A program made the position numbers and the translations under genes. A stretch of DNA of 64,000 nucleotides, taken from Malacoraja senta. Its lineage: Eukaryota. Location of the stretch: positions 7,750,001-7,814,000 of the forward strand of contig CM075989.1 of assembly GCA_038087875.1 (NCBI GenBank), in the 5' to 3' direction. The notes under the pieces are model-generated. The model ran no database searches and had not been told where the DNA came from. It saw nothing but the letters and a program-made list of their open reading frames with translations. Positions within the stretch are counted from its first letter, which is position 1; each line of letters begins with the position of its first letter. Below, piece by piece: positions 49,388 to 53,500 of this stretch.

Positions 49388-50053
49388 TACCTCAGTTGTA
49401 AATATTCACACCCTTATCTTGTAACTACGTACCCTAGTTCGATATTCTCCCCACCAGTTGAAATTGAGTCATAAAGTTATAGGGCACGGAAACATGTCTT
49501 TGCCAACATCTCAACTAACCCTCAGGATTTTCCATCCCATTCGTCTAAACTCAAAAGAGCTAGCTTCTTGAGCCACATAATAGGACCATCTCCGGTGCTA
49601 GTATAATCCTCTCTTAAATAAGAACAAACTGTATATAATACACAAAGATGGGAGCTCAAACCTATTATCGTAACAAAATTTCCTCATTGCTAAACTCCAG
49701 CCTCCTTGCCATTAAGCCAATTGATACATTTTGGGAGCACCAATTAGTGAAGGACAATGGATGGTAGGGTGCTAGGGAGCAAAGATCTTATAGCGAGCAA
49801 GATGGTCCACTCCTGCGAAAGACAATGGACTGACGTGTAGTACGCACTGAGCGTAACTTCCGTCATTTCAGTAACCCCGACCTGACTTCAGTTATGCCTC
49901 TCGCAGCGTTGCGGGGGAACAGTTTATGTGTTTTTAAATGTTTTTTTATAATTTACTTTTTAAACGGCACATACCTTGTACAGACACCAAAGGCTGCAGT
50001 AAATCAGCGGATCAGGCAGCATCTCTGGAGAGGACTGGGTGATATTTTGGGTC

Positions 50054-50137
50054 GACTTTTTCGATAGCTGCCATGACCCGTTTGATGTCATCCTTCGCCC
50101 GGCTCCTGGTCTCGGCCCACACCGATCTGCCAGACAT
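50054..50137 (-). pseudogene. BCL7A: Second, inverted BCL7A-like exon-1 fragment ([28 protein letters not shown])
   Basis: Within ORF 50012..50242; 27 of 28 residues match the recalled BCL7A N-terminus. Confidence 0.87.
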
Positions 50138-50448
50138 GCTGTGCATGTGTGTGTGTGTGTTTGTTTGGCGGAGTCTGAGGGGAGAAGCGCCAGTACCAAG
50201 GGCGAGCGAACGCGTGGACAGACGGACGAAAGCAACGATCATAGAGCAGCATAGGTGGACATTTTCGGGCCGAGACCCTTCTTCTTCTCTTGCTCCTCTT
50301 TCCCCCGACTCAGTCTGAAGAAGGGTCTCGACCCGAAAAGACCTTTGGTCACCTATTCCGCTCTATGATCGTTGTTTTCGTCCGTCTGCCGCGCGCTCTT
50401 GGTGCCGGCGCTTCTCCCCATAGACTCCGCCAAACACACATACACACC

Positions 50449-50571
50449 ATGTCTGGCAGATCGGAGCGGGCCGAGACTAGGAGCAGCAAAGATCGCTATA
50501 AGATCTTTGAGGAGCAGGGCGAAGGATGACATCAAACGGGTCATGGCAGCTATCGGAAAAGTATGGGATTG
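50449..50571 (+). pseudogene. BCL7A: Captured BCL7A-like coding exon 1 with its GTAAG donor, disrupted by a 31-bp insertion
   Basis: Reads MSGRSERAETRS[insert][19 protein letters not shown]; 92 nt without the insert; KRVMAA fits BCL7A better than BCL7B/C. Confidence 0.85.
50487..50509. mobile_element. 23-bp TIR-only remnant (footprint) of the same transposon family
   Basis: CAAAGATC+GCTATAAGATCTTTG flanked by 8-bp direct repeat AGGAGCAG (50479-50486, 50510-50517). Confidence 0.85.
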
Positions 50572-53500
50572 GTAAGGGGGAAATTAAAAAAATCCCAGAA
50601 GGAAATAGATGTTTAACAAAAAGGGAGGGGGGGGGGCGGCGCCGGCGATCACTCCATGTCCGTGTCGGAGGGAGGAGGATGGTTTGAGTTCCTCTTTCCT
50701 CCGACTCAGTCTGAAGACAGGTCTCGACATGAAATGTCACCTATTCCTTTTGTCCAGAAATGCCGCCCGACCCGCTGCATTTTGTGTCTCTGTTCGCCTT
50801 TAATCGCTCAGCCTGATATAGCAGAATCTCCCTGAACTAGCTTGACGCCATGACAGAAGCCGGTTGCGGAAATGGCGCTGAAGATTACCCATGACCCTAT
50901 TACGTTTTTTTAGCGGAGTGGACCATCTTGCTCACTATAAGATCTTTGCTAGGGAGTATTGAGAAACAAAGGGAACTTGGCATACGTCCAAACATCCTTG
51001 AAGGTGGCTGTACAGGTACATAACGTGATAAAGGGTACATATGGGATGGTGGTCAGGGCAATGAACACAATAGCAGGGACCTTTGCTTGTGAAACATTGA
51101 TGAGAGGAAATTCATCAGGATGTTGCATTTCAGTTGAGGGGAAACTGGAGTTTTAGTTATGAGAACTGGGTCTGTTTACCATGGAGCAGAGGAAGCTTTG
51201 ATTGGGGTATGTAAAATGAGTTTCCTCAGACCTGGAGAAAGGATTGAAAAATTGAGAGGATTTCAGGGAGACTTTCTTCCCTTGCTTCCATCATTCCATC
51301 AGACAGTCATAGCATTTTAAAAAGTGGCCAGATACGTAGTTGAATCAACCAAACAGGAAACACGATATCATTTGTTTTTCCAACTACTTCCAACTTGTGA
51401 TTCATGCACAATATCTAGATCCCTCCAACCGATTTGTAATCTCACAACATTTCAACAAACTGATGTTTAAGAACTGTAGGTTAGTATGCAGATAGCCTCT
51501 CGTTATAACAGATCATTGGGGGTGGGAGAAGAATGGTGTCCCCTATAATCGAGTAAGTGGAGTAAATATATAGACAGCCAATAATCATACACTAAACAAG
51601 ACAGGCGAACAGAGACCGAGCCAAAATTCACTCCAACCACCCAGCGGTCACTCGTGAAACGGCAAACATTGTCCATGTTCCCAATAAAAAAGATTTAATT
51701 TGCTACAATAGAGATCTGTTATAAAGAGGTATGTAATAACTTGGGTAGTCTGTATCTATTTTACGTTGAAGCTCATTAAGTCAATTTATGAGGCAAAGTT
51801 AAAACTCTCAATTGGTTATTTAAAATAGTGATATCTGTTTAATACATCAAATCCAAGTAAACACGAGACTGAATTTTCCATAATTCTGGGATTTTAGTAC
51901 AATTAAAATAATTCTAATTTCAAATTTACTAATAAATCAATACTGCAAAAGATTATTTATTCGTCAGATTTTTATTATTGTACTAGGGCAAAATCAGTCA
52001 CTATCAATTTTGGAAAATGGATTACTTCTGCTTTCTAACATTGTTACACCACCGAGTATTTCCATTTTCTTTGTCTCAAAGCACAACAGCAATTCAGCTG
52101 CACCAGTGAGAATGCCAGCCTCACATTGAAACATTACTTTTTTTAATTGGTGTATTATATGGAGGGTACATTTTATGAGTAGGAGCTGCTCACAGTGACC
52201 CATGCCCTTTAGCACTAATTTCAGACTGCCGAGCTTAATTTACTTAAATATAGGCAAATCCCATGTTATAGCCATTAAGGTTCTGGAAAATCTCCACGCC
52301 AGAATTCTCAAATCACTAATTAAAAATCTGAGATATGGAATAAAGTTCTCATGTAATTTGTGAATAGGTCAATGCAAGTTATATTTTTCAACTCCCTTTA
52401 TGCATATGGAGATGCGGATTTGCGTTATGGAAAAATCACAAAACGGACAGCTTTCTAGGAATGCAACCATCTCCACCAACACTAACATGGGGTCAACTGT
52501 ACTCTGGCTTTCTGCATTGAACTTTGTGAAAACACTTGTTCAATGAGCAGTTTGATGTAAAGTTTAACACGTTTATTTTGAGCAAGAATTTTCTGGCTTA
52601 AGAATAGAAACGGTACAAAATGGATTGACACTCGTTAATACTAAAATGTAACATACAATGTTATTTTTTTTCACCTCATTAAAATGCCTGTCCTTAACTC
52701 TAATAAGGAGGAAAGCAAAGAAACTAGATAACATTTCAACTTGAATACAAAACTACAAGTATAGTATTTGTTCAAAGACTAAATTAGGCATTGATAACCT
52801 CAATTATTCGTTACACATATGAAAGAATCCTTGAGCTGGGTAACCATGCGTAGCTCAGAGCCCATCTTAAAATAATTCACACTACATTTTTACGTCTGAA
52901 GATAAATATGGAAGACTAACATAGTATCATTAGAAATATACCCACTCTTTCTTTGTTGATACACACTTACAAAATGCTTTCAATCATCCGGTTATTTCTA
53001 GTCTGGCACAATCCTCAATTCCTTTTATGATGTTATTATCCGAATCCCTTTATATCACATTGGTCCTTCACGATCAGCTTATGCTTGTACTGCTCAATCT
53101 TATTAAGGAGTTGAAGGGGGTGTAGTTCAACCAACCCACTTCTCATTCTATTTCTGGATCTTGTGCCCTCAACATGAAACCAAGCATCAGAGCACAACTA
53201 TGCATTAATTCTTGAAAAATCCAATCCATAATAACATAGTGAGAACATCAAGCACAGTGGAAGCTACAAAGAGCAATAATATTTATCAAATAATCTTTAA
53301 GATTTACGCACCAGGTAAAGTACATTAAAAAGAGTACAATGTGTTGTTATTGCCCTGACATCCAGTGTAGAGATTAATAATTATAATGCTAATTCCAGTC
53401 AGGCTCTTTGACATGCCTATTCTTTCTTCCCCATCCAGAGACATGTAGACTTTTGATCAAGTCATTTTTCCGAAAAGGCTTGAGGCAATTTTCAAACTGT

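Follow-up and report, generated by a model that had tools for sequence, protein, structure and literature searches.

The 64,000-nucleotide stretch of the Malacoraja senta genome analyzed here (contig CM075989.1, positions 7,750,001–7,814,000 of the forward strand; called the window below, with positions counted from its first letter) contains, upstream of the ATG exon of a GNB1-like gene, a transposon with terminal inverted repeats (TIRs) at 49780–50948 that carries the first exon of a BCL7A-like gene. The initial annotation of this DNA had read the element as a Pack-type transposon that had itself captured the exon. We favor a nested composite of two mobile elements, in which the BCL7A exon belongs to the inner element and the TIR element carries it second-hand, and we assign this reading a probability of about 0.6. 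The cargo is regarded as second-hand because the BCL7 sequence is bordered by a dispersed short repeat on four sides, because the block that holds it ends at the natural 3′ end of that repeat, and because the sequencing depth of the BCL7 pieces greatly exceeds that of the transposon backbone. The outer element is proposed to be an old, non-autonomous cut-and-paste transposon of ~361 bp, P-like or of another superfamily that generates target-site duplications (TSDs) of 8 bp. The inner element is proposed to be a head-to-head unit of 808 bp derived from a Penelope-type terminal repeat with a hammerhead-like minimal core.

Architecture of the element and its cargo

The TIR element measures 1169 bp. 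Its TIRs (49780–49813 on the plus strand, beginning CAAAGATC, and 50915–50948 on the minus strand) are 34 bp long and complementary at 33 of 34 positions, with one mismatch (a repeat search returned 36 nucleotides (nt) at 97%), and they are flanked by exact copies of the 8-bp TSD CTAGGGAG at 49772–49779 and 50949–50956, which can be read directly. The longest open reading frame (ORF) within the element encodes 91 amino acids, and the element therefore cannot encode a transposase. In length, TIRs, TSD and lack of a transposase, the initial description of the element is confirmed. An exact look-up of the window ORF returned no record. A 26-nt TIR probe had two matches in the window, both at the ends of this element (0.00 expected from shuffles), and beyond the element and a remnant of its family inside the exon, described below, no other copies of the TIR family were found in the window. 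A metagenome scan with the TIR gave 0 matches, and a weak TIR-like match at 47053 was rejected as a chance match, there being no element at that place. Leaving aside the block that separates its two halves, the transposon backbone amounts to 361 bp, that is, a left half of 202 bp (49780–49981) and a right half of 159 bp (50790–50948), which mirror each other degenerately over ~140 nt.

Between these halves lies the 808-bp head-to-head block (49982–50789) with two inverted copies of the BCL7A 5′ untranslated region (UTR) and exon 1. This inverted duplication, which was not mentioned in the initial annotation, has arms at 50055–50284 and 50317–50562 that are 90.4% identical with four gap runs and are bounded by copies of the dispersed repeat. 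From the centre outward, the order in the arms is repeat head, BCL7 5′ UTR, exon 1 and repeat. The BCL7A-like part of the minus arm (50055–50247, minus strand) comprises 5′ UTR and, from the ATG at 50137–50135, 83 coding nt of exon 1, after which the exon is cut and fused to repeat; paralogous contigs have the same junction of exon and repeat. Its counterpart in the plus arm (50360–50571, plus strand) has 89 nt of 5′ UTR and the complete coding exon, which runs from the ATG at 50449 to the boundary TG|GTAAG at 50571|50572 and is 123 nt long, or 92 nt without the 31-nt insert that breaks it. It is followed by the splice donor GTAAG and 118 nt resembling intron 1 (50572–50689, plus strand; depth ~60x vs ~600x in the exon bin), and then by a full repeat unit.

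The minus-arm reading frame is recognized by the Pfam domain BCL_N (E = 1e-10) and is identical at 27 of 28 positions to residues 1–28 of the BCL7A chain 9wbz_O from solved BAF structures (E = 2.4e-10), with a lower score for BCL7B. At position 20, skate BCL7B has lysine (K20) and the cargo arginine (R20), which fits BCL7A. The vertebrate exon-1 ORFs in the protein library (e.g., proteins P0001–P0011) all end in ...VRKW, because read-through turns the donor TG|GTAA into TGG TAA, and these ORF ends lend independent support to an exon-1 end in codon 31, in agreement with the boundary after 92 coding nt that had been assigned initially and that matches human BCL7A. Gene-caller ORFs on raw vertebrate contigs read through the BCL7 5′ UTR and stop right after W31. 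A chondrichthyan BCL7A locus was not retrieved, and the high-ranking matches were BCL7B orthologues only. The identification of the cargo as 5′ UTR and coding exon 1 of the BCL7A type with its donor retained is upheld. Protein searches for paralogous hairpins with the 76-amino-acid ORF of the minus arm returned native BCL7 genes only, and two candidate contigs (L001 and L002) proved to be native BCL7 genes of unrelated organisms.

The borders of the BCL7 sequence assign the cargo to its block. In a BLASTN comparison of the element with the window, 49982–50055, 50303–50338 and 50706–50779 are copies of the commonest dispersed repeat of the window. The tail of this repeat, in reverse orientation, forms the outer left end of the block (49982–50054, minus strand; matching the window copies 26311–26387, 56438–56514, 48477–48551 and others). 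Its head is found in reverse at the hairpin centre, on the inner left (50248–50284, minus strand; repeat search and alignment) and in forward orientation, ending in ...CACCTATTCC, directly before the BCL7 5′ UTR (50294–50359, plus strand; repeat search and BLASTN). A full unit in forward orientation, with a hammerhead-like minimal core at 50711–50738, forms the outer right end (50690–50789, plus strand; BLASTN and motif search). All four BCL7 borders consist of this abundant short repeat and there is no junction of backbone with BCL7 sequence; the BCL7 sequence therefore never abuts the TIR element's own sequence. The Pack designation thus stands inasmuch as a host fragment lies between the TIRs of a non-autonomous element, but our data do not bear out its capture by that element. 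Both ends of the block, 49982 and 50789, fall at the point (...GTGTCT) where independent copies of the repeat cease to resemble each other. The idea that the backbone beside the block is a long form of the repeat was dropped, the match being no better than that of shuffles, 93/500 and 177/500 of which score as well.

Copy number of the parts and identity of the short repeat

Logan contigs from eight public runs, representing six coded organisms, were placed on the region, and contig-summed depth was used as a rough proxy for copy number. Run X1 matches the flanks without mismatch and hence comes from the same species as the window. Against a baseline depth of 22–30 in the unique flanks, the short repeat in X1 reaches ~0.6–2.3 million, the BCL7 bins 11,600–16,600 (with 38 distinct contigs at 50421) and the intron-like piece ~1,500. 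Across the right end of the block and the right backbone half, depth climbs stepwise, from 80–144 at 50765–50794, where only 2 contigs cross 50789/50790, to 725–1,750 at 50795–50824, 7,000–16,000 at 50825–50854 and 27,000–45,000 at 50855–50894, or from ~5x the flanks at 50790 to ~2000x at 50855–50894. It is 10,000–13,000 in the right TIR and returns to the single-copy baseline from 50955 onward, within the right TSD copy. The left half lies at 300–4000x the flanks, and its subterminal sequence is also found in the loose ends of other copies.

Expressed relative to the flanks, the BCL7 pieces are present at ~400–1500x, the backbone adjoining the block at ~4–80x and the transposon ends at ~500–2000x, and in the public runs the short repeat stands at ~100,000x. 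All runs show the same order, with the short repeat far above the TIR ends, the TIR ends equal to or above the BCL7 pieces, and the latter far above the composite-specific backbone. Since the BCL7 pieces are roughly at least 10-fold commoner than the block-adjoining backbone, the hairpin is regarded as a family of its own, and the early suggestion that copies of the BCL7A exon are spread through the genome is upheld by these depths.

The TIR element, too, belongs to a high-copy family. Many contigs in four runs match up to 50948/50950 and then continue into unrelated flanks (agreement 0.45–0.48), which identifies this point as a true mobile terminus. The only mismatch between the TIRs, A at 50934, is replaced by the family consensus G in 26 X1 contigs and also in the remnant within the exon, and is hence confined to this copy. 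Elsewhere in the family, the sequence just before 50852 reads ...CCATGACCAAAGCAAAGATACTAGAGCGGA and contains the TIR-like start CAAAGATAC (loose ends at 50852–50856); these loose ends may belong to a shorter, more abundant TIR subfamily or to a nested end.

The composite of TIR element and block is probably multi-copy as well, at a low number, forming a small cargo-carrying subfamily. The two X1 contigs that cross 50789/50790 show 9 mismatches and 5 gaps relative to the window and occur at 3–4x flank depth, and are therefore paralogs. In X2, 7 contigs match from 50797, and in front of this match stands the same repeat tail with the internal 11-nt deletion of the present copy; X14 has 3 such contigs. 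The 50789/50790 junction is common to 2 paralogous contigs in X1 and to 7–8 in X2, the outer flanks of these contigs not being covered. As paralogs have this junction in common, the nesting predates the present insertion and the cargo-bearing form was copied, be it by transposition or by duplication. The existence of further copies with these TIRs, as anticipated initially, is thus clear for the family at large, and for the cargo it is seen as this junction in the paralogous contigs.

The short repeat occurs in 13 copies in the window, as counted with one core probe, and is ~95–140 nt long (26311–26413, 35553–35626, 40035–40119, 48477–48566, 56423–56514, 59617–59680 and others). Some copies stop at ...GTGTCT and others run ~45 nt longer (...CCAGCATCTGCAGTTCC...). 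The repeat core is composed of CTGAAGA, a helix of 4–5 bp and GAAAC GTC; the pattern CTGANGA-N10-16-GAAAYRTC is found 4 times in the window, including 50711–50738, vs 0.05 expected. This layout matches the minimal hammerhead without helix III known from Penelope-like terminal repeats (PMC4209133), hence the label Penelope-type. Dual minimal hammerheads on opposite strands, 100–700 bp apart, have also been described (PMC4209133). Furthermore, in Penelope-like elements an inverted copy adjoins the unit, leaving the whole flanked by inverted repeats; introns are kept; intron-containing host genes are retrotransposed in trans; and 'tails' at the ends obscure target duplications (PMC8557442). The head-to-head arrangement of the present block, with its terminal repeats facing outward and its intron sequence kept, agrees with this picture.

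Several observations weigh against the nested reading. Rfam searches with the element, the whole window and the best repeat copy returned no hammerhead but only a spurious microRNA-like hairpin, and the window contains no Penelope reverse transcriptase, the sole reverse transcriptase being that of an APE-type long interspersed nuclear element (LINE); the Penelope-type label is therefore one that we infer, as an informed reading of motif and architecture. Exact and mismatched searches for a TSD around the 808-bp block gave nothing convincing, and entry of the block by retro-insertion is therefore not shown. The depths that set the hairpin apart are a rough measure, and hairpin copies outside TIR elements are deduced from them, none having been seen directly. 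Finally, no contig spans the whole element, the interior of which is represented by the assembly and by short, diverged contigs.

A remnant in the exon and the origin of the cargo

The 31-nt insert that interrupts the plus-arm exon (50479–50517 with both flanking duplications) is a trace of the TIR family itself. AGGAGCAG at 50479–50486 is followed by 23 bp (50487–50509) and by AGGAGCAG again at 50510–50517, whereas the minus arm, which lacks the insert, has the uninterrupted site and represents the empty state. The 23 bp consist of 6–8 nt from the start of the left TIR and 15–17 nt from the end of the right TIR, joined at a TC microhomology (17 nt, 100% match in the repeat search). The remnant represents a second, independent insertion of the TIR family with an 8-bp TSD, and it may offer a handy natural record of the family's cleavage geometry.

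An excised P element typically leaves a footprint in which intact TSDs enclose no more than 17 nt from either terminus, hAT elements normally excise without leaving their ends behind, and hAT TSDs follow the consensus nTnnnnAn. CTAGGGAG fits this hAT consensus and AGGAGCAG does not. The cut made by P transposase lies 17 nt within the TIR (PMC7776569), and a staggered cut of this kind can leave end-joined donor sites with at most 17 nt from either terminus, flanked by intact TSDs; the remnant could equally stem from an extreme internal deletion, which would look the same. A TIR of 34 bp is long for hAT, the P TIR being 31 bp. TSDs of 8 bp, as in the P superfamily, accompany both events, CTAGGGAG for the element and AGGAGCAG for the remnant, and are also made by hAT, Merlin, Zisupton and Novosib. 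Since the remnant has its own 8-bp TSD and the TIR is 34 bp long, we lean towards the P superfamily, an assignment from sequence features that is somewhat better than even.

The remnant also bears on how the block came to lie in the TIR element. The block could have been acquired by repair synthesis, the gap left by excision of a TIR element having been repaired with a BCL7 hairpin copied from elsewhere as filler; this is the Pack-type mechanism, with the cargo still second-hand. The TIR family probably excises and is repaired, as the 23-bp remnant suggests, and both the lack of a TSD at the 808-bp block and the occurrence of the junction in several paralogs agree with such an origin. However, each of the two breakpoints is at the repeat's natural end, as expected for the insertion of a whole unit, whereas for template switching this would be a coincidence, and we consider repair synthesis unlikely. 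A lower probability yet is given to true Pack-type capture, according to which the TIR element took exon 1 from native BCL7A and the hairpin family derives from this element. Although intact TIRs with a TSD enclose the cargo, several copies of the cargo-bearing junction exist and the exon contains a TIR-family remnant, this explanation is at odds with the missing junction of backbone and BCL7 sequence, with BCL7 pieces that are far commoner than the composite-specific backbone, and with a block architecture that is that of the repeat family and not that of filler. That repeats were collapsed or mis-joined during assembly between two real TIR ends is barely credible, for even if no single contig spans the element and its interior is made of high-copy repeats, the internal junctions are common to paralogs and contigs of organism D at single-copy depth, 3–10% divergent, cover 50018–50118, 50687–50783 and 50730–50832.

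For the nested composite we infer the following order of events. A retroelement-type unit would have acquired the 5′ end of BCL7A, beginning at about −89 and reaching past exon 1 into intron 1, with unspliced RNA or genomic DNA as the source, and would then have multiplied to hundreds of copies or more. One of these BCL7A-bearing units would have entered a copy of the TIR element, and the resulting composite would have given rise to between a few and a few dozen copies. One composite may have landed in an intron of the GNB1-like gene before the six sampled organisms split, and a member of the TIR family would later have entered the plus-arm exon and left it again, the 23-bp remnant staying behind between intact 8-bp TSDs. 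We propose that the element is today a decayed passenger whose main physical effect is a fold-back with arms of ~230 bp in the intron. It is doubtful, though worth entertaining, that the composite served as a working Pack-like vehicle, the whole unit being moved by a P-type transposase, which would make it a gene-fragment subfamily of the P superfamily in a vertebrate.

Comparison with known systems and genomic context

Pack-TYPE and Pack-MULE transposons of plants (PMC8903248) resemble the present element in being non-autonomous, in being flanked by a TSD, in enclosing part of a host exon between their TIRs, and in that the cargo-bearing form is apparently multi-copy. They differ in that they are Mutator or CACTA elements, in contrast to an 8-bp-TSD superfamily here (P, hAT or similar), and in that the host fragment of the present element lies within a second mobile unit, never abuts the backbone, and resides in a vertebrate. 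Of the features of Pack-TYPE elements, the host fragment between TIRs is present and the junctions of backbone with host sequence are absent; a gene fragment between TIRs is thus insufficient for a Pack-type call, and the junctions must be read. The Drosophila P element and zebrafish Pdre (PMC7776569, PMC10983969) likewise have 8-bp TSDs and internally deleted copies, with TIRs of 31 bp in P and only 13 bp in Pdre, compared with 34 bp here. The remnant is P-like as it keeps at most 17 nt of each end, which is what a 17-nt staggered cut predicts; unlike in P and Pdre, however, no THAP9/P transposase is linked to these TIRs.

As regards the inner element, Penelope-like elements and retrozyme-like derivatives (PMC8557442, PMC4209133, PMC7229834) also have hammerhead-like terminal repeats and head-to-head copies, keep introns and mobilize host sequence, and the direct-repeat period of 396 nt in the inner element lies within the retrozyme size range. 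The partial-tandem and inverted architecture of Penelope-like elements is found here as head-to-head arms of 90.4% identity with terminal repeats on the outside. Unlike in these elements, no reverse transcriptase/GIY-YIG partner is seen in the window, a TSD is missing and the ribozyme is missed by Rfam. A host first exon at hundreds of copies or more is not described for Penelope-like elements in the three papers cited. Exon capture by Helitrons employs a different vehicle, which is rolling-circle and has neither TIRs nor a TSD. The nested reading implies that a single host exon was mobilized in succession by two unrelated mobile systems, and that approximately hundreds to a thousand BCL7A first exons are scattered in a cartilaginous-fish genome; if a retroelement-type unit was indeed the capturer, the carriage of intron-containing host sequence by Penelope-like elements is extended to a high-copy vertebrate case.

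The location of the element in the first intron of GNB1, as first proposed, is putative. The minus strand carries a GNB1-like gene whose ATG exon is near 26.83 kb (MSELEQLRQEAEQLKNQIR), with further exons near 26.1, 24.6, 19.7 and 11.5 kb, and the element lies ~23 kb upstream of the ATG exon. The gene's non-coding exon further upstream was not found, and the element is intronic only if the GC-rich region at 62–64 kb holds the promoter and non-coding exon of the GNB1-like gene.

Organisms A, B, C, D, E and G all have the insertion at this site, and no empty site was found among these six coded organisms. Contigs of B, C, D, E and G link orthologous flanks, which differ by ~2–6% from the window, to the TIRs at one end or at both, the flank-to-TIR crossing on the left being covered in B and D. 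The orthologous sites being filled, the insertion is fixed and is older than the divergence of these organisms.

If transcribed in the direction of the GNB1-like gene (minus strand), 50040–50580 has a predicted folding energy of −377.6 kcal/mol (z = −29.9). A hairpin with arms of ~230 bp, formed by the inverted BCL7 copies, is predicted for the host pre-mRNA, and it is a possibility that the many BCL7A-exon hairpins transcribed as part of host introns enter double-stranded RNA pathways directed at BCL7A.

A further high-copy repeat, at 49094–49469, lies just upstream of the element and reaches a depth of 44,000–175,000 at 49282–49375. Organism B has a 90-nt deletion (49481–49570) in the unique flank beside this repeat. 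In the right flank, 50985–51024 has ~10x the depth of the neighboring unique sequence in all four runs and represents a small repeat fragment. Within the GNB1-like gene, the decayed LINE at 12661–14494 (minus strand) retains matches to the APE endonuclease Exo_endo_phos_2 (E = 5e-11) and to RVT_1 (E = 2e-22).

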